Shown here in pieces: positions 22,266-57,974 of a stretch of 64,000 nucleotides of DNA; the first letter of the stretch is position 1, and the number at the start of each line of letters is the position of its first letter. Position numbers and translations under genes: made by a program. Source of the DNA: Lepidodermella squamata (lineage: Eukaryota > Animalia > Gastrotricha); NCBI GenBank assembly GCA_047495785.1, contig JBLDXI010000012.1:372001-436000 (forward strand), in the 5' to 3' direction. Under the pieces are notes generated by a model. The model searched no databases. It had not been told where the DNA came from and saw nothing but the letters and a program-made list of their open reading frames with translations.

Positions 22266-23008
22266 ATGTTATCCTTTGTTGCTATCGCAATTTTTGGCGT
22301 ACTTGGGGCGTCGGCTCATGGAGGCAAAGGCGGATTCGGCGGTGGTAGCTGGTCATCAGAGGAGAGCGGTTACTACAGCGTTCTAACCAGCACGGTGCAA
22401 ACGTGCCTCGCCACCAAGGTGCAAACCCAGTCGATCGACATTATCATCGACCTGCCTGCCACCAGCCCGTACGGTAAACACGTTGGCCAGTTCATCGAAG
22501 CCGTTAGCACGTCGTTGCCTGCCAACAACGTTTACGTCATTTTCACGAATGGCAATTACCAGACACAGTCACCAGTCCCTGTGTCGAGCTTGTCGACATA
22601 TGCTCCGATGATTACCTCATACTCGAAGCGCCGAACCGTGACGTATAAGCCGACTACGACCGGCACTATGGTTCAAGCCATTCTTAACAACCGCCCGGCT
22701 CGTGAGTTTCAGTTTTGGAATCGAGTGATAAATATTATATCTTCCTGATTTCAGAGCTTCCAACGGCCAAGCCAGCTGGATCAGCAGCCACCCTCTTCAC
22801 AATCATCCTGACCGATTACTCGCAAATGACTCCGATTACTGCCTACCCGACGGGTGATAATGTTGTCATCTACGACCTGAGTGGCAACTTGGCTAATGCT
22901 GCTAAGGGCTACCGCACCCGAAACCTGATCATCCCACAGTCTCTGTACGGTATCGCTCTTACGACGCGTTACCAGATCTGCCAAGCCGCTGGCGGCATTA
23001 CAGCATAA
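22266..23008 (+). CDS. Secreted degenerate vWA-like protein, family member A
   Basis: Signal peptide; TCL...SIDIIIDL, VYVIFTNG, LPTAKP...FTIILTD, VVIYDLSG, TRYQICQAAGG; one intron. TATAAAA at about 22190. Confidence 0.75.
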
Positions 23009-23086
23009 AAATATCGATTCAATAATGTTTCACCAAATCTACTGCTGGCATTAGAATGACGATTCAAACTCTAATAATTATTTATT

Positions 23087-24096
23087 TTATCTCGGAAAAA
23101 TGCTTTGAAGAGTGCTCTTGTTGTAATTGAGAAGCCGGCTTCCTATTTCGTCTGTAACTTTGCCGCTTTCTTCCCGCTCGTCATCGGCATGGCAGCACAG
23201 CCATAAAGCGAATGATAGAGCACATGCCTGTATTGAGAAATAATTATTGAAATAATATAGACATTTTTCAAAAAAATCAAAAATTATTCTTTTACCCACC
23301 TGTGTGATCGAAATCATAATGAGAAGTGCAAGGGTTGTCGTTAGATGAGGTGACATATACTTGTTCCAAATTTCATCCAAGCACCCCTAATAAAATAAAA
23401 CCTGATTTTTTTCAGAAATCAGAAAATGTTATTCACCTTTGAGCAGCCTGTGGAACCCTCGTTGCATTTCTCGATCGGAGGGTACTGCCTGTCACATGCC
23501 GGCAAATCGTGGATGCCGCAGCAATCGAACTGAATACACCGGAATCAGTTGAATTTCGGCTTGAAAATTTACCGAAGTTTACCTGCTGATAGGCAAATAC
23601 CAAAACGCCTTGATATGTAACCGGCTGCTCCATTTCGGCTTCCATGTAATTTCTCAAAACCTCGATAATCTGTAAATATTGTTAACATAATAATGTAAAA
23701 GAAGCTCGAGTTTCGTGTACTTTGTATTGGCCGAATAAGCCGAAAGCAGTGACTGATGTCGAAACAGTGAAGACTATCAAAGTGAATATGAGAAAAATGG
23801 TCAGGCAGTAGAAACTGGAAAACGCAGCGCCGCAACATCCTATAACTATTGTTAAGCAAAATATTGAACCAAGTGCAATCGAGACAGTTCCGATTGCGTG
23901 GACGATTGTCGCAGCTTCCTTTAGGTAGGCTTGCTTGTTCGCCGACATCCATGAGCCGTAAATCACAAGTAACCCACTCAAAAGCTGCAAATTATAGAAA
24001 CTCTGAATTGATGTTTGAACCATGTTGAACACTCACGAAGCAAAAAATGTTGGTGAATAACATCACATTTCTGATGTGGCAATGGAATGACTTCAT
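23087..24096 (-). CDS. Tetraspanin (paralog 1)
   Basis: MKSFHCHIRNVMLFTNIFCF, four TM segments, IGCCGA after TM2, EC2 FDCCG with six Cys and GC before TM4. Confidence 0.85.
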
Positions 24097-24656
24097 CGGA
24101 ACTAGCCAGCTGGCATTATTTTAGGTGTGGAAAAATGGGGTAGGGAAATGGAAGATTTCGATTTTTTTTCATCTTAATTTATATGGAATTTATGCGAAAC
24201 CTAGGGCAATATCATGGGAATAATTTTGAGCAGATGTGGCACGTGTTCTGAGAATCAGCGCTGACCGCAATATTGCGCTCTTCACGATAATAAAAAAATC
24301 GAAGAAAATATAATTTCGACACAACCTTCAGACGGCGTCTATTTTATATATTTTTCCTATTATTTCACGTCATCACAATTAATTAAGGATGAAACCTATT
24401 GAAGAAATGCTCAATAATGATTGGGATCATTTTATTATGAAAAACTGAGCGAAAATAATGGCGACACGGCATCTTTCTCGAAAGTTTTCTGAAAACAATC
24501 AATGCCTTTGATTCTAACGACTAAAAAAGAGTCCTGCTGTAACTGCTTATTTTTTACCGCCAATATGCTGGCGGAAATGGTAAATGACGATAACATGAGC
24601 TTCGAATAAATGCGATATAAAAGAACAGATGATGTTGCGATTGTACGAGTTCTGCA

Positions 24657-25624
24657 TCATGCGCTCCTCTGGGCCACTATGCTGTAGCCTTCTTTACTGC
24701 CTCCTATTTCGCAGCATAGACAAAATGAAAAGCCGATAGCGCACATCTATAGGGGTGAGAAAACTGTTATAGGCATTGTTGTTTTTGGGACTAGAAAATC
24801 TTACGATGACAGCTGAAAGAACCATGAGTATTCCGATGGAACCGTGAATTGTCGGCGCAATGACCTTGTCCCACACCGGTTGGAAACAGCCTGTTAAACA
24901 CCTATTCGAGCCAGATTTGCATATATCGGCCGGTGGGTAATCTGTGTCGCAAGTGGCCATTGGTTCTATTCCACAGCAATTGAACTAAAATTTGGTAAAA
25001 AATTAAGAATTTTTGGGGTTGACGAGTTTCATTAGTTAATCACTCTATTATGAGCTGCTACCATCAGTCCGTCGTAGTCGACTGGCTTTTCGAGTTCTGT
25101 TCTCATGGTCAAGAGGAGAAGTTGTTTGAGCTGTAGGAAATAACAATATTAATCCAACTTTTTCGAAGTTCAGGATAAAAATAGTCTTACAAAGTCTTGC
25201 CAGATCGCTCCCAGCAGTCCAGCGAAGATCGCCGTACATAGCAAGATGACCATAATAAGCATGAACTAATTATCGTAAAAAATGTAATGTCCCATTAATT
25301 GATTGTTGGAAATGTTTTACCGCGAGCAATGCGCCTCGACTTTGGCGAAGCGCGCCGCAGCAGCCAAGGAAAGACGTGATTGAAGTCAGAATGCCGATGC
25401 AAATGAGTGAAGCTCCAACGCCGTGAACTATCATTTTCGCATCTTCCACGATGATATTTGGCTTGCTTATTATGATCCAGGATCCGAAACCAATCAGACC
25501 TATGCCTATCACCTGTTTTCATGCATTCGAATGAAAAAACGAACGAATTTCAATGGCAGTAGTTTACCACGAAGATGATATTAGCCACAATCATCGAGTA
25601 TCTGATGAAGCACTGAGTGAACAT
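24657..25624 (-). CDS. Tetraspanin (paralog 2) with C-terminal GYSIV (YxxPhi) motif
   Basis: MFTQCFIRYSMIVANIIFV, FLGCCGALRQS, EC2 FNCCG...TGC with six Cys, and tail ...KEGYSIVAQRSA*. Confidence 0.87.
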
Positions 25625-26086
25625 CTTCGAAAAATTCGGTTTATCAATAAAATAAACCTAGAGATAATTTCGGACTGTTATATCTCATGCCCAGCAATTT
25701 TTAAGGATTTTATTCGGAGCTTTTGGTGGGGTGATCGTGAAGTGAGCTGGTCGCTCAGCACTTTACTGCCATGTGTTTATTACCTCGGAACATTAATGCA
25801 GGTTGGGTAATTGATTGTGTTTCACACTCAAGATAAACGTCAACTGCATCGTATTATCCACCGACGCATATAGTCCTATATAGCAGATAACGTGAAAGAT
25901 AAAACCGTTCCCGCCACGGTCTACGGGCCCTGATTTTCGCGGCCAGATTTCTCAAAGATAAAACATTTCAGGAGCTAGCACTGAACCAAAATATTATTCA
26001 TTTACGGTCACAACATGTCTCGCTATTAATAACTTCAAGCGTTTTATGAAAAAACAATTTCAAAGCGATCCTAGTGTTACAATCAA

Positions 26087-27028
26087 TTAGTACAAAAGGT
26101 TTATGCCTCGAATACCGCCGACAGATTGGCACATCATATAGCGCACTATATTCACAAAGTAGTTGAGTTGCTGAGGCTCGTCGACGATTATAACGTTTTT
26201 TTGAATGTAGGACCGAGCCACGGATGACGCCGACCATCCACCGCCGATGTCTAGAATTAGGGCAGAGTTCGGGGATGGGAACAGTTCAGGTCTAGTTGCC
26301 TGAGTACCATCTGTTAAAACGACGGTAAATGCCGTCACGAGTTCCGCCGGTTTCGAAGTTGGCAAGCGAATAGGAATGCCGGCAGCTCGGGCCTTCAAAG
26401 TTCGCGATGTAATCTTAGGCAGCTGAGAACCTCGAGGGTCAAAATCTTCAGCCTCCATTCCAGAAACTGCCGAGCCTGATGAAGTGTGGAAAAAGCTCTG
26501 AATCGAAGCTCCTATCCCTTGGAAAAAACTGACAAATGCATTCGGCTGTTGCGTCGTAGTAATCGGCTGAGTTTCATCGTATGTCACAGTACTTTCGTTC
26601 AGGTAAAATTTTGTCTTGCCATCCAGAATTACCGAGTATAACTAGCGTAAAATAAAAATTATTCAGTCTTTTCGGTTATCAGATTTTCAAACCTTGAGGG
26701 CGTCCATATCCATTTGAACTTCCCTAATGAAGTCTCGAAGATAGTCGATAAAAATCGGGCCGAACCAACGGCCGAAAAATCTGCCGATAGCCGTAGTATG
26801 TTGAGTATTTTGAACATGCTCGTTTTCTTGAGGATTCGGCGCAATGTCGATTAAAATGTCGAAGCTAGTTGTTTGATTTGCTCCGAGAATGCAACTACGA
26901 ACTAAATTGTTAATGGCCAAGTTTCCTGAGCCATCATTGGATAGAAACGCCCGTGTTGTTGTAGGCCCAGCTTCAATCAGACCAACAATAACGAGAAGCA
27001 CTGAAAACAAACATACAATATATTTCAT
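26087..27028 (-). CDS. Secreted degenerate vWA-like protein, family member B
   Basis: Signal peptide; SCI...SFDILIDI, LYSVILDG..FYLN, LPTSKP...FTVVLTDG, LILDIGGG, VRYMMCQSVGG; one intron. Confidence 0.8.
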
Positions 27029-27348
27029 CTCGAAGTCTTTCAGGGCGACTCATTGTTAAAAAAGCTTTTCGCTCGTTCAAGACAAAAGCTGGGTGACTCA
27101 CTGCTTTATCGTTTTCTATGGAATGTGTTTTTGTGTAACGTGGGGGCGAATTTCATTATAAAGTATTTCATATTATGGCAAACTGTGTAGTCAACTGCTT
27201 TGAAGTTTTTGAAAGTTACACTCAGTACTCATTATTTTCTGACCTTGAGTAAGTATAACTATATCAATTGCAAGGGGATTTATTGGAAATTTCGAAGGAC
27301 AATTGTTTCATTAGGGGAATCCAAGGATGTTACATTTGAATGAACCTA

Positions 27349-28361
27349 TTACAGATCTTGCTGTTTGGTTTGAAGTCCTTTCAATGCTTGGCACATCATA
27401 AATCGAGTGATCTGCAAAAACCGCGCCAGATCTTGAGGATATTCGACAATCAGTACATTGTGAGCCGTGTAGCCCGGATTCGCCATCGACCAGAACCCGC
27501 CCAGGTCAAGAATTACGCTAGAATTCGACTGCGGGTACCAACCTGGAGTCGTTCCTTGACTACCGTCGGTAATAACCACGGTAAAGTCCGACGTGACATC
27601 CTTGCTCGTTGGCAAATTGATCGGATAGCCTTGCAATCGGCCCTCTAACAACTTTCGAGTCAACTTGGCTAAACGTGTCGACGACTTCAAATCAGGCCAG
27701 GTGTCATCCTCGAGAGGTGAAGCAGACTGAACGGTGTTAGTAAGAGCGTCCGCGAACATTCCCGCAACTTCATTGCCAAAATTGAAGAAAGCATGCAACA
27801 GGCCAAGATGCAGCTGGGCTGGTCGAGTTGTTGTCGTCGTAGTTGTAGTCGTAGTCGTAGTTCGATCTAAAACAGCCTGAGATGAAGCATTTAGGTAATA
27901 GATTCGCTCATCGTCGAGGATCCCTATGAAAAGCTGTAAAATAAACAGAAAATTAGGTCTTAATTTTATTTTTATTCGATTATTTTTGCCTTCTCGGGGC
28001 TACTCAAGTGATTTTCGATTTCTGCGACAAACAGCGCGATGTATTCGTGGGTGAATAAAGGATCCGCGTTGAAGACTCGACCGGCCGGCGTCGCTGGGAA
28101 AGTAGGTCGAACGTATTGCCGGTTCGATCCAGGGTAGTAAGGGCTCTTCAGCGGATTCCTCGCCACGTCAATAAGGATGTCAAATGAAGTGCCGTTAGCA
28201 GCGGTGGACAAGCACGTCTTAATTACATCGCGAATCGAAGTCGCTGCCGGCTCGTTGTGGCCACCTTTGGCCGAGGCGGTATTGTTTTCACTGGCAGCAG
28301 TAACCGCTGTACCGGCTAATACGAACACTAAAATCGAGACCTGTAAAGCCGCCGATCGCAT
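27349..28361 (-). CDS. Secreted degenerate vWA-like protein, family member C (GC-AG intron)
   Basis: Signal peptide; TCL...SFDILIDV, YYLN, Thr run, FTVVITDG, VILDLGG, TRFMMCQ. Intron 27934-27989 begins with GC at the position of the GT introns in paralogs B and D. Confidence 0.78.
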
Positions 28362-28629
28362 ATTATTAGGAGGAGGAGGAAAATAATAACCCTGACAATA
28401 GGATGAACACCTGCTTCAGGCTTTATTAATAAGTAACATCAGCAAAGACAAAAAACCATAAGAACTCGGGTTGGAAAAAAGAATATATAGGTATAATCCA
28501 TTGTTGGTCTAGACTGCTGTGTTTGCGAGGCTGTCATTCAAGCGAAACCAGGGGCTGTAACGTTATACGTGGGCAAAAAGTAACCTGTCCAGCTATTTGA
28601 CATAAGCGGGAGATTTGAAAATAAAAAAC

Positions 28630-29572
28630 CTAGGCCGCATTGATGCCGCCTAGAGATTGGCACATCATGTAGTGAACTGTGCCGACGAAATCATCTAAAT
28701 CCTGCGGCTGATCTACGAGCAAGACGTTTCGATAAGTGTAGCTTTTAGCAGCTGCCGATCCCGACCAGCCGCCGCCGATGTCAAGGATAACTGAAGACTC
28801 CTTAGCAGGGTACAAACTAAGAGGAGAATTTTGAGTGCCATCGGTGATCACAACCGTGAAGGGGGTGACGAAATCTGCCGGTTTTTTGTTCGGCAGGAAT
28901 AGAGCTTTACTGGCAGCTCTAGCTTTCAGAGCTCTTGCGGTGATTTTAGGAAGATTCGCTCCCTTTGGATCGATCTCATCCGGATCTGGTCCAGCCAATT
29001 GTTGGCCGGATGGCTGACGGGGTATCAATCTACCGATCGCAGATCCGATACCGCTGAAGAAGCTTGAAATCTTGCTTGGCTTTTCAGTCGTTGTAGTCGA
29101 TGAGCCGTCGAGTGACTGGACAGAATCAAATGATGTCGTAGATTCATTCAAGTAGTAATATGAAGATCCGTCAAGAATAACAGAGTAGACCTAAACCAGA
29201 TAGTTCTGTGGAAGTTCTCGATAGAAATGATTGAAAATCTACCTTAACGAGTGAATCCTCGTTCTTTTGAACATTTGCAACAAATTTCTTGACGTAGTCG
29301 ATGAAAATCGGGCCGAAGTACTTGCCAAAAAAGCGGCCGATCGAAGTGGAATGCTGAACACTCTGAACTTGCTCGTTGGTTTGCGGGTTCTGAGCTATGT
29401 CTATCAAAATGTCAAAGGAGACGGAACTGTTAGCTGCCATTAGGCAGTCGTGAATTAAATCATCGGTCTGTGGGCTTGGCGTAGTCGTTGTAGTAGGGCT
29501 TTTTGTCGTCGCATCCCTTGCGCTAGCGGCAAAACCAGTGAAGCACAGCACTGCTAAACTTAATCGCAACAT
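28630..29572 (-). CDS. Secreted degenerate vWA-like protein, family member D (closest to B)
   Basis: MLRLSLAVLCFTGFAASA; DCL...SFDILIDI, IGRFFGKYFGPIFIDY, FTVVITDG, VILDIGGGW, VHYMMCQSLGG. Confidence 0.8.
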
Positions 29573-29966
29573 AACTTTTCTTGGAGGGAACCAGAATTTT
29601 CCGTGAGTTAAATGCTGAATGTTGTTGAAAAACACTACTAAAACTACTTCTTGGCTTTGAAACAAAAATGCAGTGACGCATTCACCCAGATTACAGCGAG
29701 CACGTTTTATTTGTCTGTACAAGATGAAAAACTAGTCAACACGACGAGGTTAACAATAGGACGAGGGTGTTTTCATATTTTGAACGACAGGTGACAGAGT
29801 TGTTGAAAAAATACAGTTTAAACATTCAACATTCAATCTGCGTGTTTAGTTCTTTTTCAAGAAACAATGCACATTCCGATATACCGGCACGTGAATTGAA
29901 GGAATTATGTTTGATTGAAGGAAAACGTCAGTTTCTCGAGGGCTTAGAGATCCTCCTGTAGGCACT

Positions 29967-30574
29967 TCAAAGGCGACCAGCAGCAAAGGCGGAGTCCATA
30001 TCGAAGGTCTGGCTTGGCTGCTGCTGAGGGCGAGGCCGCATGAGGTATTGTTGCTGGGCGCGGGCAGCCTGGCTGGCATCGGCAGATCCGGATTGCTGGC
30101 GCAGAGCTGCGGCTTGCTGCTGCTGATAATACTGAGCGTACTGCTGTTGCTGGGCACGAGACGGTGATGGCGCTTCGCCGGCCTGCTGCTGCTGCTGAAG
30201 TTGGCGGTAGGCGGCCGCGTACTGCGGTTGCTGCTGCTGACGAGCTGCTGAGCCGCTGGCCAAGTAGTACTGCTGGGCAGCCGCTTGGGCTGATTGACGT
30301 TGTGGTGCCTGTTGTTGCTGTTGTTGCTGCTGCTGCTGAGCGTGAACCCAAGCTGGTTGCGAGTTTAGGTTGAAGGTTGGCTGTTCAGAAGGTCTCGGGC
30401 GGCGCTGAGGTGGTTGCTGAGCGTTGATCGCGGCAGCGGCAACTTCATCGGCGTCCTGGCTGAAAGCTGATTAAAATTCAAAATGTTGGATATATTAATA
30501 TGAGTGAGAGGTCAAAATTGTGTCATACCTGGGGCAACCAACTGAATGGCGAAAATGACAACGGCGAATTTCAT
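29967..30574 (-). CDS. Secreted Gln/Ala/Tyr-rich low-complexity protein (2 exons)
   Basis: MKFAVVIFAIQLVAP|AFSQ signal peptide split by a phase-1 intron; poly-Q tracts with QYY/QYAQYY; ends TFDMDSAFAAGRL*. Confidence 0.78.
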
Positions 30575-31236
30575 GATGGCGAGGTCTCAGATGTTTCTTC
30601 CCTAATATTTTAAGAAGCTAAAGCAGTGTGCCGCACGGTGGCAATTGCCAGGGCTTAAATAGCCATGACCGGCCCGTATTATTAGACCCCCGGCTATCGC
30701 GCAGCATCTCTTCTCCACTTCAAGACAAACAAAATATTGACACAGGTCTACTTTCAAGCATCGTAATATCCGCCAACAAAAAACACACCGGATAAATATT
30801 TATCATACATCACCCGAGAAAAAAATGGCCTTGCCGTGTGTTAAGAGGTCACGCCGGTGCTTGGAAAAAACTAGTTTGGTCTGGAAAGAGATTAACCCAA
30901 CATGCATTAAATTGCCTTAATTAATTCAAAGCAGTTCGAAAATTGACATAAAAAATCTCGGCAAAAGGTTATTTGGCCAGAATTCCTCCTTTTACAATGA
31001 GATCTCCATAATAATTGATCACTTAAATTTGATTCAGCTTCATCTTTTCGCGATAGCTCATTACGAGACTTCATAGCCTATAACGCTTCATTGTTCCTCG
31101 AATCGTTTTATTAAATCAAAGACAAAAGAATTGCGAAAGAATGAAGATTTGTTTTGTGGGCAGGTAGAGGTACAAGAATTAGGAAAAATGACGAAAAATT
31201 GCTTGAGAACTTGGAAATAATTGAAACCATGCGATG

Positions 31237-37487: not shown

Positions 37488-39371
37488 TCAGTGATTGATT
37501 GAACATGAGTGGAAAATCCAGTCGTGACTTCGCGCCTGGTTGATATCGTTGATGGGTCACATTTTTGTTAACATCAAATTTACTTTTTTTAACATCAAAT
37601 TACTTTTTCTACCATCAAACTCTTTTTTCAACAACAAATTTCGATATGTTAATTTTTGCGATCCACACTCATTAAAACCCTTGATGGTGACCAGTCCTGA
37701 AAAATTACAGTAAATTCGGACGAACAATGTAGTTTGTTGCTGTCGAACCCGTTTGAGAAATAATAGAAAATTGAGTTAGCTGCAATTTTTCAAGTTACGG
37801 ACAAATATTTGATTTTTGGCCAACAAAAATTGAATTTTTAAATATTTGTCCGAATAATTTTACGATTCTCATTTTTGCGATGACAATGGTTCAAATGAGT
37901 GAAATTAGTCAGGGCCCTTCAAGGTTAAGCCGCCGGAACGTTTTACGCCGTCTTCGCCCCGGATGCCATCAGCACCCATGTCTCGCCGTTGAGAAGCAAC
38001 TTTGCCCGGCTGACATCGTTCGTAGCCGGACTTTCGCATGTAGCGACAATGACAATAGGTGATGTCGTCACCGTTTGCGAGGTCTCTTTATAATTCAAAA
38101 TGTCTTTCAAATACTATGAATCGCCAAAAAATCCAATAATCGATTAGCGCAGACCCCTGATTGTTGATAATAGCTTCCTTTCATGAGCTTTCATGAGCTA
38201 CTCAGAACTTTTGCTCATTTGTCTAGGACGAGTCTGGGCCCCGCTATCATCACCCGAGGTGATAGGCACTTAAAATCCACAACTTCATCATGAAAGTATA
38301 TCCTTCCCCATGAAATACTAATTTCTGAATTTTGCTGTTGAAGAAAGAGTTTGATGATAGAAAAAGTAATTTGATGTTGAAAAAAGTAAATTTGATGTTA
38401 AAAAAAATATTTTCCTCGTTGATGAAAAATCGAAGACGAGTCGAAACTCGATTGTTCGCAACCAAATCGATTAGCTTTTCGAAGCAGCTGTTCCACCTGT
38501 GCAGTATTGCCGCTTGATTGGGCACAAGAGACGTCGCTAGCTCAGAGTCCATTTTAAGACCCGAGCTTGCAAGCAAAACACAAAGACTTTCGATCAGCAG
38601 GTCATCGGGCGCCTCCAAAGAGGCACCGTTTGTAGCGAGGCGAAACGCGGCATCTCCAACAGCTCGCACGGATACATCATTGGAGCGAAAAAGCTCGCAA
38701 AACAATCTATTTCATGGAACAATTAAGGTGTTTTTCCATAAAATAAAACTCACAAAATATTGGCGATAAATCGCTTTTTGATCACGTATTTCAGCTCTTC
38801 GAGTTCGATGTACGCCGCTTTTCGTTCAGAAATTGAAATGGCACTTGCAAACCGTTCTTCGAGCAGCCGCTGCTCCTGAGAGATCCCGCTCAAGCGTGAA
38901 TCAAAATGAGCCTGCCACATTTCAAGTAAGCAGGCTTTGAAGAAACTTTGACCAGGTTCATGAGTCACTTCGGCTTGTATTTCGAACTAGGGAGAAGGAA
39001 CGAATTAAATTACAGACTGAAAAACGGGCATAATACCGTTATCAATGCCGAACAAAGTTTCCCGAATATTTTCACCAAATTCTTTTCAAGTATCGCCTGA
39101 AAAGCAATGATAAACTCGCAATTGATCAATCAAATTTATAATTTACGTTTTGATGAATGATTGCGACGAGCTTTCTGAAACTTGGTGAGAGACCCCGCGA
39201 ATGATCAGTTGGTAGGTATTTCATCAGCAGGTCCATAAGATTAGAAGCAACTGAATCAAAGCTGGCTGGGACAAGCCTGTTCAAGGAAGCTTGAACAATT
39301 CGTAAGGTATCCTCATCCAAACCACCAATGTCGTGCGCAACACTTGAGGTTGGAAAACTAGCTCCCCTCAT
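37488..39371 (-). pseudogene. MIF4G-only eIF4G-like gene whose last exon is interrupted by a transposon
   Basis: VQASLNRL, AILEK, KRFIANI..LFCELF, IESLCVLL..SG..MD, RVSTRLRFFIN. The native end INDINQARSHDW...* (stop 37488, AATAAA 37474-37479) lies on the far side of the insertion. The start codon is uncertain. Confidence 0.7.
37555..38415. mobile_element. Non-autonomous Mutator-like (MULE/foldback) element, 861 bp
   Basis: 9-bp TSD TCGTTGATG (37546-37554 and 38416-38424); GG...CC termini; ~85-bp imperfect TIRs built of AACATCAAATTACTTTTT subrepeats. Confidence 0.88.
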
Positions 39372-39969: not shown

Positions 39970-42623
39970 ATGGAAGCTTTCGAACAAATCCGAGAGCTTG
40001 GAGCCGGCAGTTATGGCCGCGCGATATTGGTTCGACGGCGTGGTACAGATCAGCCTTTTCTGGTAATAAAACAGATGCGCCTTCCCTACCTCATGTCGGC
40101 AGCTCAGCCGGAGGGTGCCGCTTGGAGTGACGCCAAAATTGTCGAACTTGCCTATCAAGAAGCAAAATTACTTACTACTCTGAGCCATCCTAATATTGTT
40201 AAAGCTCACGAAGCATTCGAAGGTTGGTATTATTTGCTTTTGGAAATAATTTTCCATGGATTTTTTCCCCTCAGATTCCGCAAATAATTTGAATTTGGTG
40301 ATGGAGTTTTGCGACGGAGGTGATTTGAACATGGCCATCACTCAACAGCAACAACTGGGCGGCGTTTTCTTCCCTGAATCGCAACTTCGTGCTTGGTTCT
40401 CGCAACTTGTCTTCGCAGTTAAATACCTCCACGACCGTCACATTTTGCACCGCGACATCAAGGCGGCGAATATTTTTCTCACCGTCGATCGCCGCGTTGT
40501 CAAACTGGGTGATTTCGGCATTGCGAAATGCCTCGATCGAACTGGTGGTCTGACGTTTACCCAAATTGGAACACCGACTAATATCGCCCCAGAGCTCTGC
40601 GATGGTCTGCCGTATGGTACAAAAGCCGAAGTTTGGTCGCTTGGAGTTGTTTTGTATCAAATGGCTACTCTAAATTATCCGGTAAAATTACTTGAAAATT
40701 CGGGAATAAATCTATTAAAATTTTGCAGTTTATGGAAAGTACTTTTCCAGCTTTGATGAATGCGATAAAAACAAAATCACCCGCGCCAATTTCGGAAAAT
40801 TTCTCCCCCGAACTGCGGCAGATCGTCGATCAAATGCTTGCAAAGAACGCAGATGACCGGCCGTCAGTTGACCAGTTGATTTCGTCCGATTTCATGTTAT
40901 CCGCTGTCGCCGAGTTGGTGACGAAGGGCGTTACTGTCGGCGCTGTTGCCGAGGTTCAGGCCACGATGGCAACAAGTAAATCTTCCTCGGAAAATTTGGC
41001 AGATTCAGCATTGACCAGCTGCTGTTCATCCTCGTCGGCGTACTCGAACGCATCCGCGCCTACTGCGACGGTGTCACTTCGTTCGACGGCCAGCGATGAG
41101 ATAAAAGCGGTAATTAGCGATGGCGATTTAGCTAGTCGCATCCGATCGACAGTCGAGCCGATTTTCCGCGAACCTCTGATTGCACTGCTCAACGAACAAA
41201 TGTTGACAGCTGAGACCCTGGTGACCTTGGACGATGGCGAGTTACGTGAGCTGTGTCCCAATAAGAAAGGTTCGTGTTAACCATTTTAGTGTTATCAATC
41301 CTAATTAATCCTCTTTTTAGGTCTACAATTGGCTCTAATAAAATTCGTCCAGCAATTACGCGAGGAATCGGGTGAAAATGTTGCAAAATCATTGCGTGAA
41401 TCGCTGGACAAAAGCGATATCGATTCTTTGAAGCGTTTATCTAAAAATAATAGCGAAATCGGTGATATAGTTGTCGACCCTGAAACTCGTAATACTTCCC
41501 TTCACTACGCGTGTAAGCTCGGCAATAGCGAGGCTATCAAGTTGTTGCTATCTCTCGGCGCCGATGTTTTGGCCCGAAATCGTTACGACGATCAACCGCT
41601 CCACGTTGCGGCATTCAATGGCCGGTTGCTGGCTGTCGATGTTCTTTTGCGAAGTGGCAAATGTGACGTCAATGCTGTGGGTCAATTGGGTCGAACTCCG
41701 TTGCACATGGCGGCGGCTTCTGGCTATCAAAACGTCGCGTCGATGTTAATTGAAAAAGGCGCGACGATTGACCCGATTTCTGGCCAGGAGGACCTGCAGC
41801 AAACACCACTTCTAGTTGCAACTTTTTACGGCCACGGTATAGTGTTTTTTAATTTCTATCTACCACAATGTCATCTTCGAACATCTTTCAGCTGGAATTG
41901 TTCGGTTGCTCTTGGAAAAAAACGCTAAGCTGACCTCGACGAACGCGCATGGCGACTCGGCGTTGCAAATCGCTACAGTTCAGAACAAGTTGGAAATCGT
42001 CAAAGCTTTGCTGGATAAAAACGGCCCTGGTATCGCCGAGTTGTTGGAACTGCGTGGCTTTCGAGGCCGAATGCCTCTTCATGCCGCCGCGGCTTGGGGC
42101 CGAGCTGATGTCGCGCGAATTCTGCTGTCGAAAGGTGCTAATCTGCGCGCGAAAAGTGGCCGCGATGAGTGCGGCGATTCTCCTCTCCACCTGGCTGCTT
42201 ACTACGGCCACACGGATGTAGCAAAGGTAAGCGGGACTCGATTTTTTTCGAAGTTTGTTCAAACTAGGCCGTTCATCTCAGGTCCTTGTCGACGCGGATC
42301 CAGCTGCAATGGAATTAAGTATGTTACTTATTTTATTTTATTTTTAATTTTATCTGTTCATTATTCCAGCCAACGATAACGGCGAGACACCTCTGAGTCG
42401 AGCTTGTTTTAATGGCCAGCTTGCCGTAGCGCGGCTGCTGCTTAACCGTGGAGCTTCGGTTACAGTTCGAGACAAAAGCAGTCACACGCCGTTGTATTAC
42501 GCCAAGCTGAAGTCACAGCAGATCGTTGAAGCATCGGGCGCCGGTTCGGGCAGTGCAATAGAAAATCCTGCCGCAGCTATTGTGCAGCTCCTGATGCAAA
42601 ATCGGCAAAATTTAGAAGACTAA
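39970..42623 (+). CDS. NIMA-related (NEK) kinase fused to a SAM-like domain and ankyrin repeats
   Basis: GAGSYG, VIK, HPNIV, HRDIKAANIFL, KLGDFG, IGTP..APE. SAM-like LNEQMLTAETLVTLDDGELREL.P..G...AL. Multiple ankyrin repeats (TSLHYAC, QPLHVAA, RTPLHMAA, QTPLLVA, DSALQIA, MPLHAAA, DSPLHLAA, ETPLSRA, HTPLYYA). Confidence 0.85.
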
Positions 42624-44371: not shown

Positions 44372-45439
44372 ATGTTCGTACTTGAGTTTTCGCTTTTGTT
44401 ATTCTCGTTCAATCTCCTCTCGGTGATTGCAGTCAACGACAATGGTCCTTCGCCTGTTGCCGGCAAATTGCTTCTGAAAGGTCCCAGCTTTGTTTGGGGA
44501 TACGGCGCCGATAACGGCCCAGCCGTCTGGCCTCAATACTACCCTGTAGCTCTAGGCAAGCGTCAATCCCCGATAAACATCGATTTCGACGGAGCCAAGT
44601 CAGACGAGAACCACTCACTACCCCCTATTAAAACTAAGTACAATACGAAAGGCACCGCCCAAACTCTATCAACATTCGGTTACACCTTCACGATTAAATT
44701 TGCTGCCAACAAATCAAACGGTAATTTTAAAATTGGAGCTATGATGCGTGGCTCTCTTTATAAACGGAATTATTATTAGAGCTATCGGGCGCGGCTTTGA
44801 AAGGTGTATATCAACTGGCCAATATCCACTTGCACTGGGGAGCAAACGGCCGTGTTGGCTCGGAGCACACGTTCAACGGGAAGCACTTTCCTGCCGAACT
44901 GCACATCGTTCACTTCAAAAAATCCTACGGCAATCTGACGACGGCTTTGAATTACGGTGACGGTCTTGCTGTTCTCGGAATATTTGTCAAGGTCTCAAAT
45001 GAATGAACTCTATCTTGGATTGCTTTCTATGCTTTATTCAGGTTGGTGAGAAAAATCGTGAAATTCAAAAGATTATCGACAAAATTGCCAATGCTGTGCC
45101 GCCGGCTAACAAAAATGGAAGTGATATCATCCAAAATCAGCGCCTGGACGTCTCGAAACTCCTGCCTGATGATACCGACTGCTTCTTCACCTACCTCGGT
45201 TTGGGCTTGATACATGATTCTCTCCCTTATATTTTACTTCATTTATTTAAGGATCTCTGACCGCTCCGCCACTCAAGGAAAGTGTAATTTGGACCGTGCT
45301 GCATGAACACATCGAAATGTCGGCCAAGCAGTTGCGCACTCTTCGCAAGTACTTTCCAACAAATTACCGCCCAGTTCAGCCTCTTAATGGCCGGGTCGTT
45401 CGCCGTTCGGGCACCTGCTTGGGTGACTTCTCCGACTAA
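44372..45439 (+). CDS. Secreted alpha-carbonic anhydrase, copy 1 (4 exons)
   Basis: Signal peptide; WGY, GP..W, RQSPINI, zinc ligands IHLHWG and ELHIVH, GSEH, GLAVLG, YLGSLTAPP..ESVIW, NYRPVQPLNGR. Confidence 0.93.
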
Positions 45440-49082: not shown

Positions 49083-52000
49083 TTAGGATTTGACCGTAAA
49101 ATCCCAATCATTCTAGAAAAAATAAATGTTAGAAAAATGAAGAAAAAAAATTAAAAACGGTAAAATACCTCTCGAGCTTTAAGAACATCATGGATGAAAA
49201 ATCGGATCCGGGATGACTGCGACTTGTCTTTCGAAAATTTGTGAAGGCTTCCGAGACATTCCTGGCGCCACCATTGGTTAAGGTTTTTGCCCGAGCCTTC
49301 CTGCTTTTTACTACTAATTTCATCCTCCATTTGCTTGCCGACATCGCGCAACAGTTTGCAAAGACTCTCCAGGGTGTCCTCATTCGGGTCGGAGAGCAGC
49401 CGCTTAACACAGCCGACGATGATTGAAAGATTGATTTGGTAGTTTCGGTAAAGTTCGCTGATAAAGCGGATGTTACCGAGATATTTAGCTTTCCGCACGT
49501 TTTTAAACTCCTCGAGATTCTCAGACGCGTCTTTCTTCTCAGCATCGGTCTTCGCTTTTTCCAACTCGCGCTCAAGTTCCTCCAACCTCGCCGCGCCATG
49601 ATCGTGCTCCTCAAATTCGCGCTGGCAAAATGTGAGCATAACACGGCGGAATGACACTTTTTCACCGCTTTCATTCGCGATAAATTCGATCTAAAAAAAT
49701 TTAAATAAAAAAATAGTTGAAAAAATTGCAATAATTTACCTGGCTGAGATGAATGAATAATTGAGCGTAGATGTCGGCAAGTTTCGGCTCGGAAATCGCC
49801 TTGGCAAATATGATGCCAACAAAGTCGGTGAACAGCTTCATTTTGTCGTCAACCTTCTGCATGCGCTCTTCATTTTCATTGCTCAACTGCTCGTAAATGC
49901 GGCGGGTCATGACCTCGTAATTTTCAATCGTCATCTTATTCAACGTTCCTCGCAATTCACGGAAAATCTCCTCCGCCGGCGAGCGTTGCTTCATCATTCG
50001 TTTCATGGGCGAAACTTCGACGGCGATATCGCGAGGAATCGACGCGTTTCTCGGCAACGAAGGACTTCCGTTGCCTTTCAGCTCCAATAACGCCAATCTA
50101 CTGTAGCTTCGTTTAATATTAGATGATGAATCATTACGTGGAATTGCGGTTTCGTCGTTTTCATTTTCAATCGTTCGTGGGGGCGGCGGCGAGGGGGACG
50201 CTGGTGGCCGGCGAAGTGGCGCTAATACAGCGTTGAAGAACGAGTTGATCTCAGTCGCCGGTTTCGTTTCGGGCAATTTTGCTTCCTCTGGCGCGGTTTT
50301 GGCAATGAACTCGATTGGTGAATCAGACGATGAATCATCGTCCACATCGGCCGCATCTGTCTTAATTGTACTCACAGCCGCGTCGTCATTTTGCAGTACT
50401 GACACGTCATCGCATTGCGGGTTAGGCGGGTCCGATGAAAGCTGTGCGGTAGATGATTCAACTTGCGAAACAGGTTTTTCAGCAATAACAACGTCATTCA
50501 CTTGGCTCTAAAAATTATGATAATAAATTGTAAATTTATGTAAATGCGTGAAAATTTTTCTAAAAATCCCTCCTTAAAAAAATCAAGAAAATAAATTGAC
50601 AAGTGAAAAGTGGGGTTCAGCGAAATGTTTCACATCGTGAGATTTCGATGCTGCTTTCAAGATCAATGAACGAGAAGTTGAATGATATCAAAAAGAGGTT
50701 GATAGTCATCAGGGTTGCTGAGAAAATTGGCTGCAAAGTTTATGGGTGAAAATTGCCAGTTTGCTGACGAGAAAAGCGCGCTCAGTTTTTTATTGCATCA
50801 ATAATAACTTGTCGCGCAATAAATTATGATGTTATTTTCTTATGCGCAGTAGAGATTTTTGGGGTAATTAAGCCTTTTCGGCGACACCTTGGGGTCTCCC
50901 GTCTTTTGAGGTGCATGGTAGCCTTCTAGTGGTCTGAATTCTGACAATTCAAAATCCTCAAGAAAAACTGAGTAAGAACTCCCTCTTCCCTCTTCAAGTC
51001 AACACACTTTATGCCATTTGCAGGAAAATTCAGAAAATACTGTAACGTGGTCTTATTTCGGACAAAAACCTGTTTTTCGGGCTTAATTTTTTGAGGTGAA
51101 CGAATTTTTTGACGTACTTTGCGCCAAAAGATGCACCTTGAAAAACTGCATATCCTAGTGTTAATCGCGGTTAAAATATACCTTCTCCAGCACAGGTATT
51201 CACGGGTATTCACGGATAACTGACTCGGCTAATTTCGGACACAACTGGGGTAATTTCGGACAGCTGAGTGTGAATATTTAGATTAGGGCCGAAGTTCACA
51301 TTAAAGCGAGATAAAATTTGTGAGCAGATTTAAAAATAAAAAATAAATTGCATGTTGAGGGATTTGAACCCCCGATAGCGAATTGGTGCTCTCAAGCCAG
51401 TTCAGTGCTATTCTCACTAAAATATTAAAGTTTAAAAACTGTCAAGGTCGATTGAATTCTCTGTAGTTGGAGGCTGTCCGAAATTAGACGGGGGATATCG
51501 GTTTTTCTGGCGGAATTTCAGGTAAAATGTCTCGTATAAATTTGTTCCAAACATGCCAGCCTAACTAAATTCGATGCGCTCTTTCTTTTGCGCTTCTATC
51601 CGGCAAAAAATACTGCCATTTGAGAAAGTTGGCAATTTTTTACCTCGGCGCTCACCTGCGAAGAAGTGCAACCATTCTTCGTAAACAAATCCGTTTGTAA
51701 TGTTTCAGGTGTCATTTGAAAGACAAGACTCTGGGCTATCTCCTGCATTTTGAACAGTATTTCTATCTACCAGGGTTGTGGAGAAACTCACGCTAAAAGC
51801 CAAAAGTGTCCGAAATTACCCTGTCCGAAAAAGGACTGCGTTACAGTACGCCACTTTTCACTTTGTAACGGTAAATTAGCAAAATAAGACAAACAAACCG
51901 TGGGTGATGCTGATGAAAGAGGCGTTTGATTCACGGGGGTCGATTGCTCCGAGATTTTAGAAGCCGCAGCTTCAACGGGTGCCGCGTCAATAACAAGGGT

Positions 52001-52714
52001 AGTTGGCTCGCGGGCAGATCCTAACAACTGCATGGCGTCATTCACCGGGGTCGAAGCCTCTGATGGGTAGCCGGAATCATCCGGGGCCGGTACTACGACT
52101 TGTTTCTCCGTTTTCGGATTAATAATCGGTATCGGATTCCTTTTGCGTTTGAAAATCACCGGGGCTGAAGGAGGCTCGACTGCCGGGGTTTCGAATGGGT
52201 AGCCACCACCCGACTGCTGGATGATTAAATTGATACCGCTTGGTAATTCTGAGGTGGGCAAGAATTGCGGCCCGCCAATTGAAATCGCATTGGTGTCAAG
52301 CGTCATGTAAGCGCCATTCGGTTGTTGGGGGTAAATGTACTGCTGCTGCTGCTGCATACGAGGGGGTCGATTCGAAGGTAAACCTGCTCGAGCTTGCTGA
52401 TCATTGAAATTACTGCTGCTCAACCGGCTGTTACTCCGAGTAACCGCAGCTTGGTCGGGAATGAAATTTGGCGGCATCGGAGCAGTTGCTGGCTGCACTG
52501 CGGGTGCATTTTGGGCCCACGACGGCACAAAATTAGGCACAGCGGCTTGAGCTGGCACAAAACCAGTCGGTTGTTGAGGAGCCGCGTAATATTGGCCTAT
52601 GTTTGCTGATTAGTAAATTTTACCGCATTTCCGTATAATTTTACCTGTAAAAGCTGGGTTTTGTAGCTGCTGTTGTTGCTGCCAATAAAAATCGTTGTAG
52701 TTTGGTGCAAACAT
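49083..52714 (-). CDS. EIF4G: eIF4G-like protein with PABP motif, eIF4E motif and MIF4G, but no MA3/W2
   Basis: Q/P-rich N-terminus; KRKRNPIPIINP (PABP-binding-like); KRSYSRLALLEL (YxxxxLPhi). MIF4G motifs RGTLNKMT, FAKAISEP, FRRVMLTFCQREFE, LGNIRFISEL, ESLCKLL, RIRFFIHDVLKARE|NDW, then stop at 49083. Confidence 0.82.
51040..51846. mobile_element. Tc1/mariner(pogo)-type MITE in the eIF4G intron, 807 bp
   Basis: TA flanks (51038-51039, 51847-51848). TIRs CTGTAACGTGGTCTTATTTCGGACA versus the reverse complement CTGTAACGCAGTCCTTTTTCGGACA. Internal TAATTTCGGACA motifs in both orientations. Confidence 0.8.
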
Positions 52715-53834
52715 TTGTAAAATATAATAAAAAATAAAATTCTAGTGAAGCAAAAATTAAATTGCGGTCAAAAAGTGCAAGGTCGAATTTAGGGTATAAC
52801 TTCGTCTGAGAACAGGAAACGCAATCGAGCCCCGTCTATTCTTTGCCCTTTCAGTGAAAAATAGATCAAAACATCACTTCATCGAAAATCGCTAACACGT
52901 GTGCTCCTGTCTGGAAAGTAATAAGCTTTCGGCGCAGTCGTGCAATAAACGTGTGTAGATAGGTAATGCATGGCAAAAAAACACAACATGTGCCTATCGC
53001 TTTTTTTGCCGGGTATATAGAAAAAAACGTTGGCACATTAATAATAATAATAAAAATGCGACGCACAGCGTGTTCTTTCATGCCAAGCTGTTTTTTTCGT
53101 ATAAGATGATTCATCACATGGGCGGGAGCGCGATGACTAATTCTACGCGACATGAATGCGCGTCATCATTGTATTAATATTATCTACTTTTAACGTATAA
53201 TAATAATAATAGTAATGTGTATTCGCAGTGGTAACACAACTATGCATCCGAACATTTAGTCCTATTATTGTCGCCGCCGCCGAGCGAGAAGGTGTAGTAT
53301 TTCCAATAGTATTATCATCGCTGTTTCTGGCTGCGAAAAAATGCCGTGCGTTGCTTCGCGATAAAAAATACGCGCGCACTACTCATATCGTGGCTTATCC
53401 CGCCGCATCAAATTACTGTCGCGAGTATTTCCTGTATTTCTACTACGAATAAGGGAACCACGCTATTTGAAACAAAAAATCATTCATAAAATTATTTTTT
53501 ACGCATTTCACACGAATCGCTGCGTAGTATTTTTGCTTTCCCTATGGATGATGGATGGTAAAGTACGCGGCGCCGAGGCTGATTCTAGCAATTACGCGCT
53601 GCTGATAGCTGTGCCCACTCGCGCCTCCTCCCCCACTCGATACACAGCGTGATAAGATTGATTTTGCGCGTATAATAAGAAACGTTTTTTGACCTTTTAA
53701 ATCATCTAATTTCCGATTACAAAGCTTACGATGTTTGAGCTAGAAAAATACAATTCTACGAAGTTTTTACTGGTCATTTGTCAACAAGCCAAAAACAAAA
53801 TCAAGATGAAACGAGATCAAAAAATGTTCGGTGC

Positions 53835-55271
53835 TTAATTGCCCATTTGCGTCGGTCCCCCACGTTTCTTGGTCAGTTTGGCATCACGTGCTGCAATGGA
53901 GTTCGATACAAATTCGATCGTTGCTTCGTTTGAGGGGGCTGGAAAAAATTGAGAAATGAAACACTAAAATTAAGACAAAAATCAACTCAATTTACTTGCA
54001 TTTTCGTTTTGCTCGGAAGTTGTTTCAGAGTCGGAAATATCGGAAATGTTGCCTCGAAATTCGTCAGTTTCGTCGTTGGCGGTCGTCCCCGTCGCTTCCG
54101 CTTCGTCACCACCTAAAGCGATTTTCAAGCTCTCAAACTGACCGAGGACGTGCTGCTCGAGGCATTCGTCGAACAACACGTCAGCAGCACTCGGTCGGTT
54201 TGACATTCGGAACTGCAACATCCGGCTCGTGAGGCTGCGATAATTCTCAGAAAATTGACCCGGAATTTTTTTGGCAGGTCTGAGGATAGAAACCTTGAAA
54301 ATTAAGACATTTAAATTAAATTTCTTCTCACGGTTTCGCCATTTGCGTGACCATTTCAGTTTGATTGAAGCCGTGGAATGGCAGGTCGAAAACAGCGAGT
54401 TCGAAAAGCAACACGCCCATTGACCAAATATCGGTTTTGAAATCGATTTGATTCTTGAAAACCTCAGGGGCTCGATAGCACCAAGCAGCCAGCGGGTCTT
54501 CGCTAGACTCTACAGGAATTTTACATCTAAAAAAGCGCAAAATTTTGAGTCTTGTAGACATTTTGATTTAGGTATAGACTAACGTTTCGCGGAACCTTGC
54601 TAGACCGTAATCACTAACTTTAACCAAGGAGCAAGAGGCGTCTTCGAAAAGAATGTTCTGTAAAGGAAATTGTTGAAGATTATATTGAAAGATTCAATTC
54701 ACTTGCCTGGCAGTTCAAAGATCCGTGCATTAGTTTGTTGCTATGAAGATAATGAATAGCTGTTGCGATCGAGAAAAACCATTCAAGAATCTTGAATTTT
54801 GGTCAGTGAAAATAGAGTATTTCGAAGTTTGAAGATCTACCTGTTTCTCAGAGAATCGGGAGTTTTTCGAATGATATTCCGAGATTTTCTGTCTCATTGA
54901 CCCACCGCTGCAAACTTCCATTACAAACACCCATTTTTTCTTTATCAAGTCTGCAAAATTAATTTTCAATTTCCTTTGATGGATCGAACGTGAAAAACTA
55001 ACCGCCTTTAACAACGTCGATTATTCTTACCAGCTCAGAGCACGGAAGTCTCAACAAAGCTTTAGCCTGAAAATTCTGTGAAATTAACTGAAATTTAGAG
55101 GATCAATTGTCTCACCTCAACAATGGCTTTCTTTAGCTGATCGGAATTTTTGAGATCATCGGTCGAGAATTCCTTCAACACGACAACTTCATTGTCAGCT
55201 ATGCGTCGAGCTTTGGAAGTGGTACAAAATCGACCCCGGCGCAGGATAGAGTCAACTCTGAACCGGCTCAT
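53835..55271 (-). CDS. NEK-like pseudokinase (multi-exon)
   Basis: MSRFRVDSILRRGRF..., VVLKE, FVMEVCSGGS, ILEWF..IATAIHYLH, catalytic loop HGSLNCQN, DYG, YRAPE, KTDIWSMG, NRPSA. One GC-AG intron (54658-54706). Confidence 0.78.
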
Positions 55272-55629
55272 CCAATCGAGATAGAAAAATTTCTAAAGCG
55301 AATGGAAATAAAAAGTTATCATTTGATGTTATTCAGATTTTAGGGTTATATTCAGGAAAACCCGGGATATTTCACTTTGAAACTTGATATTTCAACCCAA
55401 AAAACAGGCACAAATTTTCGGCAGAATAGTTTTATTCACAACACAGTTTGAATGCTTGGAATGTATCCGATAGAAATTTTATACTAGAAAAAGCGGAGAA
55501 ACGAAAGAAGATGCTCACTCGATCGATCATATAGGTGAGATCAAACTATTCTGCCGCAGGGGCAAAACCGGGGTCTAGGTCAGCAGGTTTGAAGAAATGT
55601 TTAACACAGGTGTCGCGCCATGTCCCGAT

Positions 55630-56406
55630 TTACAAGGCTCCGCCCATAGCTTGGCAAAGGTGCAGGCGAACGGTTTCATTCAGGCCCTTCATTCCGTGCA
55701 GGCTCAGGAATTGGCCGCGGAAGGTCGGGTTAGCCAGGGTGAAATTTCCGCTCAGATCAATGACAACGTTTGGCGTGGGGTAAGTCGAGACGGCGGCTTT
55801 CTTCGCTGCGTCGGTGATAACCAGGGTGAGAGCGGTGGCTGAGGCTCCCTCTGGGCGGCTGGTGGGCTGTTCGGCCAACAGGGCGTCGCTGCTAAGCACG
55901 TGGGCGAGATGCATGGCGCCAGGGCTGGGGCCTCGAGGACCATGGCCGGGCTTGGGCTTACCGAAGAGGGGCTCAGGCGCAGCGGCGGTTTGGTTCAGGT
56001 AGAACTTGGTCTCGTTGGCGAAAATTATCACAACGCTCTGCGGAAATTAAGCAAATAAACTTCAGATCTTCATTTCGTTTCTTTAACTTACGTTTCCCTT
56101 GGTGAAAGACCGGCTGATCGAATCTACGAACTCAGCAATGTCTCCAATCATCGGGCTAGGCTTCGGGGGAGGGGGTGGCGGTGGGTTCCTACCGGGCTTG
56201 CCGCCCATTGGTGGTTTCGGAGCAGCAACTGGTTTCTTCGGCTGGGCAACGTCGATAAATACATCGAGGGACTTGCCGCTAATACCCGACAAGCACTTAT
56301 CTAGGGCTGCAAAGGAAGGTGGTGCGAAGAAGTGCTCGTGGGAGCCGCTTTTGTCGAAAGCTGAGGCATAGGCCACAGCGACTAAAACCAGGGTAAACTT
56401 ATACAT
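55630..56406 (-). CDS. Secreted degenerate vWA-like protein, member F (Pro-rich inserts)
   Basis: MYKFTLVLVAVAYASA; KCL...SLDVFIDV, VIIFANETKFYLN, PTSRP...LTLVITD, VVIDLSG, VRLHLCQAMGG. Confidence 0.78.
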
Positions 56407-56852
56407 GCTTCAAGTTCAGGGAGATCCGATACTTTTCGGTAAAAATGGAATGTATGCCGATATGCTATGCTGGCTAAGTCTTTAAATAGTGAGACATCAA
56501 CGTGCTGTCGTGGTTTGGCCTTATTACAGCAATATTTACACAGCGTTACGGAACACAATAGAAGGCGATGAAAAAAGAAGCGCGGCGTGTCGTAAACAAC
56601 CTTAATTAGCCGACAGAAACACCTTAAAAAAGTGCACGAATTTTTTACCGATGCGACATGGTGTTTTTTACTATTATAACCGAGATAGCAAAAAAAGACA
56701 AGAAACACGTCATTTATCATGGACCAATTTCTGGCTACATAGTATACTAATTTAACAGGTCACTGGCGCTAAAGGACGCGTGATAAACTGTAATAATTAG
56801 CAAGCAGAATTCAAGCAAGAATCAAACAAGAGCCAAAGTATGAAAGTCATAT

Positions 56853-57974
56853 TTAATAGGCATTTTCGATTTTTCCAATAGACATCTCATTCGATTCGTC
56901 CGCTTGGCCGGTATTACCCCCAATCGCCTAATAAAAAAATATTAAATTAACATCCGATTTGTTCAAATTTTATACCTGGCAAATCATGAATTGAACAGTT
57001 TGAACGAATCGGTCCAGTGAACTTGAGGTCGGAACGATGAAAAGATTGCGCTTCAAGTAGTTGCGGGTGTTAGCGGCAACTTTTCCGCCGATATCTAGCA
57101 CAATCACATTGTCGCTCCTCGGGGCAAGGCTTGAAATGGGATTTTTCTGCTCCGAATCGGTTATTACAACAGTGAAGAATGTCGGCTTGGCGCTCTCGTT
57201 CTTCTCAGTCGGAAATTCTGAGAATAAGAATAATTCATCAGTCATCCTGAATTTTGAATCTCAAAACTCACCAATAGGCTCGTTGTAGGCCTGAGCGTTG
57301 AAGAGCTGCATCATGAGTTGCCTAAGGCTAGGCAGTGGTTTTTCAACGGGACCCGAAAACGAGTGTTGGTACCACCATTGAACCATGCTACCGCCTTTGA
57401 AATTCGTTTGGGTGAACCCAGTGACCGGGGCAGGGGTGGTCGTGGTCACAACCTCAACCGGCTCCGGTGCATTCAAGTAATATCTGGTCTGGTTACCCGG
57501 CTCGCCATCAACAATCACGGCGTACAACTAAAAAAATCGATTTTAAACTGATTTTTCGTAATTTTTTTCTCATACGTTTTTCTTCGGAATCGCCCTGCTC
57601 AGTTCGTCAACAAAACCGGCAACGTCATACTGGTTAATGGGCGACTGGCGGGTCATCATCATGGGCGGCCACCAGAGACTGTCTTCCTGATCCGCGTTTC
57701 GCCACGATTTAATGTCGACCACAACATCGACCGCGCCATTCACCGATGCGAGGCACTTTTCTAGAAAGTCGTCAACATCGTTGCGCCGCGTCTCGAACGG
57801 ATTCATCATCATCATTTGCGACATCATGCGATGCGGTGACATCACCGTCGCTCCCTTGTGGCGGCCTGTTTTAAAATCGTAGGGATTAAAGCCGTGCGGT
57901 TAGGAAATAAACTTACGCGCCCAAGACGTGCCGACTAAACACAGCGCAATCAGCAGAAAATATCGAAAATTCAT
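56853..57974 (-). CDS. Secreted degenerate vWA-like protein, member G (Met-rich inserts, 5 exons)
   Basis: MNFRYFLLIALCLVGTSWA; KCL...AVDVVVDI, LYAVIVDG...YYLN, FPT...FFTVVITD, VIVLDIGG, VQFMICQ|AIGG; stop at 56853. Confidence 0.78.

Follow-up and report, generated by a model that had tools for sequence, protein, structure and literature searches.

A family of small, probably secreted proteins with a predicted, very divergent vWA-fold domain in the gastrotrich Lepidodermella squamata

Our analysis of a 64,000-nt stretch of the genome of the gastrotrich Lepidodermella squamata (the window; positions 372,001 to 436,000 of contig JBLDXI010000012.1, assembly GCA_047495785.1) identifies seven spliced genes, g1 to g7, each of which probably encodes a small secreted protein with one very divergent von Willebrand factor A (vWA)-fold domain, for which predicted models suggest an extracellular binding or matrix module as the likeliest role. 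The family is a sequence orphan within the known vWA fold, and it is larger and older than the window alone could show.

The seven genes span 22266–57974 in window numbering, which is used throughout, and open reading frames and splice signals give products of ~250–330 residues (Table 1). Exon boundaries were derived from reading frames and splice signals, and exons were aligned and searched singly; full-length evidence comes from an intron-free paralogue of the same genome and from full-length relatives found in searches. One series of blocks runs in the same order through all the products: C-L-x(6-8)-D-x-x-x-D, then a helix, h-h-V-I-x-D/N-G..Y-Y-L-N, and a variable insert, followed by LPTxKP..FTVVITDG, V-I-x-D-I/L-G/S-G, N-V/L-x-I, and R-Y/F-M-x-C-Q-x-x-G-G. 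The order is visible in alignments of the C-terminal exons (alignment A1; 23–51% identity, with invariant T, D, P, D, G, C, and Q) and of the N-terminal exons (alignment A2; invariant C, D, D, and P), and the similarity of the seven proteins is far beyond chance. Every protein opens with Met and a hydrophobic stretch typical, by eye, of a signal peptide, and each has private low-complexity inserts: Gly in g1, Thr runs in g2–g4, Asp in g5, Pro in g6, and Met in g7. N-x-S/T sequons recur ahead of β1 and at YYLN-x-S/T, and a Thr/Pro-rich second variable stretch, in which one Pro is invariant (27/27), follows β3. An internal duplication, suggested when MAFFT overlaid the N-terminal exon on the C-terminal half (alignments A3 and A7), was rejected: an hhalign comparison of the N-half with the C-half returned a probability of 0.2%.

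The GT-AG introns of the seven genes are 48–80 nt long, and two intron positions are shared among subsets of them. Intron A immediately precedes the 'xYxVIxDG' strand and has phase 0 in g2, g4, g6, and g7 and a shifted, phase-1 form in g3; intron B lies directly before LPT, in phase 1, and is common to g1, g5, and g7. Gene g7 has an additional 48-nt intron, and its CQxxGG block is intact because this intron sits immediately after C-Q. Two environmental relatives with uninterrupted reading frames, P0003, an entry of a marine metatranscriptome catalogue, and P0006, encoded on a contig of 971 nt, read straight across the positions of introns A and B, supporting the splice junctions. A preliminary description of the window, made from its letters and open reading frames, had listed the seven genes with their ordered blocks, leader peptides, shared intron positions, and private inserts, and in all these respects it was accurate.

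Table 1. Positions and features of the family genes in the window and elsewhere in the genome.
Gene or group	Position (exons, 5' to 3')	Strand	Features
g1	22266-22701, 22755-23008	+	2 exons; Gly-rich N-terminal insert; intron B only
g2	27028-26693, 26641-26087	-	2 exons; Thr-rich linker; intron A phase 0
g3	28361-28004, 27923-27349	-	2 exons; run of 12 Thr; intron A shifted, phase 1
g4	29572-29243, 29190-28630	-	2 exons; Thr-rich linker; intron A phase 0
g5	36963-36756, 36705-36133, 36080-35761	-	3 exons; long poly-Asp/Glu N-terminal region; intron B
g6	56406-56092, 56037-55630	-	2 exons; Pro-rich β1-α1 loop; intron A phase 0
g7	57974-57917, 57865-57576, 57527-57272, 57217-56976, 56927-56853	-	5 exons; Met-rich inserts; introns A (phase 0) and B
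Family genes, same contig outside the window	C12:170199, 286766, 289153		found with profile A8
Family genes, other contigs	C42, six; C20, three in tandem; C7, C13, C24, C33, one each		found with profile A8
L001-type gene	L001:2179-3087		intron-free

The family extends well beyond the seven members first described. A profile of the seven C-terminal exons detected five further genomic places on other contigs (E 4e-11 to 5e-8), and a broader profile to which relatives had been added (A8) returned 36 exon matches, counted as ~23 genes. A tree of the C-terminal block divides the family into two clades with 100/100 support: a window-type clade, with the C-terminal motif CQxxGG, and a clade typified by the intron-free L001 gene, with short inserts, the very conserved motifs DFVIDIAPSPS, NNLGRMTKLALWNRDNGLP, KPIYTIVITDGASG, and VIDIGNRRF, and the ending AC[KR]. 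The three tandem members on contig C20 (locus L003, G000:C20:1200000-1209999, positions 3440–8012) are very divergent, with branch lengths of 1.7–2.2, and one of the three terminates in FCSLFT rather than CQxxGG; the adjacent genes encode a CUB-domain protein and a formin with an FH2 domain.

An exhaustive HMMER scan of 1.84 billion representative proteins revealed 19 relatives at E ≤ 1e-3, of which 16 reach E ≤ 1e-10 and the best 5e-60. At the 90%-cluster level all relatives are environmental and none is from NCBI or UniRef, in a scanned library that holds one representative per 50% cluster and in which named members could be hidden. Their sources are ENA metagenome contigs of 8–47 kb, Logan and JGI/IMG contigs of ~0.9–1.7 kb (whose proteins are named 'hypothetical protein' at most), and the one marine metatranscriptome-catalogue entry; the ENA contigs are animal-like, carrying genes for myosin heavy chain, a ligand-gated channel, XRN1, and ACE. 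Queried with the second g4 exon, a word-index protein search found no match; queried with a profile, it found P0001 only. The family had been called lineage-specific: rare it is, but it is not private to this genome.

Relationships between individual members reach across organisms. Specifically, g2 and the environmental protein P0002 are 51–64% identical, the P0002 gene adjoins a g3-like gene (loci L007/L008), P0006 is 35–39% identical to g7, and the tree pairs g5 with P0004 (98/90), g3 with P0007 (99/95), and L001 with P0001 (support 98–99). Such orthologue pairs imply that the paralogues arose before the divergence from those organisms and have been retained ever since. P0002 (L007/L008:10001-11005), the orthologue of g2, retains intron A unspliced and in frame, with ~20 extra residues, because it was called by a prokaryotic gene finder; environmental eukaryote proteins in such collections can carry read-through introns.

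We predicted structures for one member of each clade with AlphaFold2: the g7-like P0006 (alignment A8, 34 rows; mean predicted local distance difference test score, pLDDT, 82.9; predicted template modelling score, pTM, 0.76) and the genome's own L001 protein (alignment A10, 41 rows; mean pLDDT 81.9, pTM 0.77). In both models the core blocks have pLDDT >90, the loops of low pLDDT match the variable inserts in position, and the element order is helix, β1, long low-confidence loop, helix, β2/β3 hairpin, low-confidence linker, helix, β4, β5, short helix, β6, and long C-terminal helix. This corresponds to the vWA order βA-α-βB-βC(antiparallel hairpin)-α-βD-α-βE-α-βF-α, in a single domain per protein of ~190–230 core residues. 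A Foldseek search of the PDB returned only vWA domains at the top (probability 0.97–1.0): proximal thread matrix protein 1 of mussel byssus (PTMP1; PDB 4cn8/4cn9) at E 5.7e-4, followed by VWF A1, integrin I domains, and TRAP. VIA-align, which is independent of Foldseek and compared each model with 48,161 representatives, placed PTMP1 (10.8), VWF A1 (10.3), and ANTXR2 (10.0) closest to the L001 model, and with either model vWA domains make up almost all of the first ~40 structural neighbours. The vWA-type Rossmann fold that had been foreseen for the family is thus the one that both models display.

The predicted core preserves only part of the metal-ion-dependent adhesion site (MIDAS). A classical MIDAS comprises DxSxS after βA, a Thr in the α3-α4 loop, and an Asp after βD. 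Here DxSxS is absent in full from all seven window proteins, in which the strand-ending Asp is followed by IAPN, VARN, IAQN, LPAT, ISPN, VAQP, or IKSW, and across the family the forms are DxAxN, DxAxS, DxPxT, DxSxN, DxAxP, and DxKxW: most members have Ala in place of the first MIDAS Ser, and N, S, P, T, or W occupies the second position. The loop that would carry these Ser residues (β1-α1) is enlarged to 20–40 residues; no other part of the protein varies as much or is modelled with so little confidence. In terms of MIDAS type, therefore, the family has lost DxSxS and retained two of the Asp positions, namely the Asp ending β1 (L001 D81; 20/21) and D229 in the T/S228-D229-G230 that ends β4 (32/34). 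A third Asp, D250 at the end of β5, is the most conserved residue of the whole family (34/34) and is followed by a Gly turn; canonical vWA domains have GxG after β5, without the acid. Because β1, β4, and β5 are adjacent by fold topology, their Asp are expected to lie together on the face that in other vWA domains bears the MIDAS. The preliminary description had called the family MIDAS-less and metal-independent: as far as the sequence goes the first term is right, but metal independence is not established, and with two MIDAS Asp retained and the third Asp invariant a cation site is possible.

A Cys before β1 (C66; 18/20) and a Cys in the last helix (C292; 30/34) lie within a few residues of the positions of VWF A1 C1272-C1458, as judged from the aligned ranges (model 61–299 against 1268–1464). 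The C1272-C1458 disulfide of VWF A1 is established. The earlier proposal of an N-C Cys pair is borne out as regards the placing of conserved Cys at these positions, and the bond itself is probable by analogy.

Comparison with known vWA systems sets the family apart from each of them. VWF A1 and A3 are alike in the placing of the Cys pair and in working without a functional MIDAS metal, but identity is ~10% with no profile-level similarity; the VWF domains are modules of a giant multidomain protein, whereas the family consists of single-domain proteins of 250–330 residues that have a 20–40-residue disordered β1-α1 insert, a mucin-like linker after βC, and an invariant Asp ending β5. PTMP1 is likewise a small secreted invertebrate matrix protein made of vWA domains only, but it has two tandem domains and, according to its entry title, an occupied MIDAS, whereas the family has one domain, no DxSxS, and no sequence similarity to PTMP1. 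Unlike the family, vWA domains of collagen VI/matrilin type match Pfam PF00092 and sit in multidomain chains, and the canonical ones of this genome are unrelated to it in sequence. Relative to the MIDAS-dependent integrin I domains, ANTXR2/CMG2, and TRAP, the family has lost both MIDAS Ser (DxAx[N/S/P/W]) and has a long variable insert as the carrier loop, making ligand binding through a classical MIDAS metal unlikely.

These features suggest a mode of action in which a rigid vWA core would serve as a display scaffold. The core would be a six-stranded sheet between helices with a βB-βC hairpin, probably clamped, as in VWF A domains, by a disulfide from the Cys just before β1 to the Cys ending the last helix. 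The classical MIDAS is dismantled, with both Ser gone and their carrier loop now long, predicted to be disordered, low in complexity, and specific to each paralogue; a second, Thr/Pro-rich, mucin-like linker follows βC; and the two MIDAS Asp and the third invariant Asp at the end of β5 remain, as a putative acidic patch on that face. The core would thereby expose its variable loops, which are probably glycosylated, together with the acidic patch, to matrix, mucus, adhesive, or coat material, and it is by these loops that paralogues would differ in partner or in material property. That the proteins are secreted, disulfide-bonded, and glycosylated, that they bind partners, and that the Asp patch has a role are all points that we infer. 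Within the vWA-fold assignment, a matrix, mucus, or adhesive role is our best guess, put forward tentatively as somewhat short of probable, because the structural neighbours (PTMP1, collagen VI, and VWF A1/A3) are matrix and adhesion proteins.

With the same fold, the family could instead be a diversified recognition repertoire, of immune type or for mate or food, in which the hypervariable β1-α1 loop confers specificity and the Asp triad forms a cation-dependent binding site. The most variable insert falls precisely within the loop where canonical vWA domains have their ligand-binding MIDAS residues, tandem duplication has expanded the family to ~23 copies, and Asp is invariant or nearly so at the β1, β4, and β5 ends (20/21, 32/34, and 34/34); however, the loops are low-complexity (poly-Pro, Met, Asp, or Thr) rather than structured variable loops, and the paralogues are old, with conserved orthologue pairs, rather than fast-turning-over, so we regard such a repertoire as unlikely. 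A bolder form of the idea, that the classical MIDAS has been replaced by another acidic site (the β1/β4/β5-end Asp) binding a cation or a basic ligand, and that the enlarged β1-α1 loops confer distinct specificities on the ~23 variants, giving a little-studied invertebrate lineage a diversified repertoire of its own for extracellular recognition or adhesion, appears fairly improbable.

Several observations weigh against a vWA-fold matrix or binding module. The fold is that of predicted models only, and it is carried to the seven window proteins through alignments at 33–40% identity (P0006 against window exons). Pfam detected no VWA family (PF00092, PF13519, PF13768, and kin) in the exons or in L001, nor, with the cutoff relaxed to E < 5, in any of the 34 sequences that make up A8; PDB sequences searched by HMM gave noise only; and hhalign of A8 against an alignment of nine canonical PF00092 domains of the same genome, which has at least 40 canonical PF00092 matches, returned a probability of 0.2%. 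The ESMFold single-sequence model of P0004 in the ESM Atlas is unfolded, with a pTM of 0.24, and a role in matrix or adhesion is proposed by analogy with structural neighbours. That Pfam, PDB sequences, and hhalign are silent agrees with the earlier expectation that no characterised family would be found. An ESM Atlas feature search gave sub-threshold matches only (0.76–0.79); two of these, short bacterial clusters partly annotated as VWA, were set aside as too weak to count.

The vWA assignment could accordingly be an artefact, the proteins having another three-layer α/β (flavodoxin/Rossmann-like) fold or an Asp-based small-molecule or enzymatic function, and AlphaFold having drifted to the commonest similar template class. 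Consistent with this, no sequence method ties the family to vWA, the alignments used for folding are shallow (34 and 41 rows, many partial), and ESMFold fails on P0004. Against it, models from both deep clades, built from different alignments, have the same element order; the antiparallel hairpin sets vWA apart from plain Rossmann and flavodoxin folds; both searches list vWA domains almost exclusively among the first ~40 neighbours; the terminal Cys pair, the hhhhTDG strand, and the glycine turn that follows β5 are all vWA-like; and no HAD-type or other Asp-enzyme fold appears in the structural matches. We consider an artefact of this kind very unlikely. It is also highly doubtful that the proteins are structural material proper (egg-shell, cuticle or integument, or glue), with inserts that do the cross-linking, coacervation, or hydration and a vWA core that is a folding and secretion handle, since, for all that insert composition is typical of structural or adhesive proteins and the best structural neighbour is a byssus matrix protein, the inserts are short (20–50 residues) compared with true structural proteins, and the L001-type clade, with its strongly conserved core motifs and short inserts, suggests that the core itself is functional.

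A secreted, vWA-fold binding or matrix module provides a testable structural hypothesis for an orphan family without a Pfam, PDB, or named relative. The two clades and their clear invariants could serve as the starting point of a profile with which to annotate environmental and invertebrate data, and ~23 putatively secreted proteins become candidates for a part in matrix, mucus, adhesion, or recognition. As modelled, the family would illustrate how far a vWA domain can drift, with both MIDAS Ser lost, a disordered insert in the MIDAS loop, a new invariant Asp, and the fold kept; it would establish no new principle, divergent and MIDAS-less vWA domains being already well known.

The window is eukaryotic, as indicated by a genome of 121 Mb, GT-AG introns of ~50 nt, and metazoan neighbour genes. 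The family genes form three groups, at 22–30 kb, 36–37 kb, and 55.6–58 kb, and the intervening genes encode an integrin alpha, a ceramide glucosyltransferase, two tetraspanins, a kinase, an ankyrin protein, a carbonic anhydrase, and a coiled-coil protein; with ordinary genes between the groups, the arrangement is not an operon-like system. The tetraspanin exons (PF00335) lie between g1 and g2 at 23682–25512 on the minus strand (open reading frames 23682–24032, E 1e-10, and 25270–25512, E 2.5e-8) and were read as two genes; together with the vWA-fold genes they make the stretch rich in surface and secreted proteins. FG-GAP repeat exons of the integrin alpha-like gene occupy 3353–7294 (minus strand), and the ceramide glucosyltransferase (GT21) is a single exon at 17431–18615 (plus strand) whose best named relatives are in molluscs, flatworms, and an annelid, at 35–44% identity, with no rotifer among the top 120 matches. 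Searches for a nematode SL1 RNA or leader, for the N domain of nematode cuticle collagens, and for the arthropod R&R cuticle domain were negative, though only weakly so for the family searches, whose controls were silent as well. The sequence was read as that of a small, probably spiralian, invertebrate, and no part of the window resembled human DNA. The kinase, ankyrin, and carbonic anhydrase exons are at 40256–40756, 41329–41928, and 44372–44779, respectively.

Directly upstream of g4, the segment 29944–30373 is GC-rich and contains overlapping Gln/Ala-rich low-complexity open frames on both strands; at 30–32 kb the GC content is 0.48 and the GC skew +0.19. Just upstream of g5, an 82-nt inverted repeat that is 93% complementary has arms at 37561–37642 and 38327–38408, 684 nt apart, and the interval 37561–38408 may be a small terminal-inverted-repeat or foldback element.

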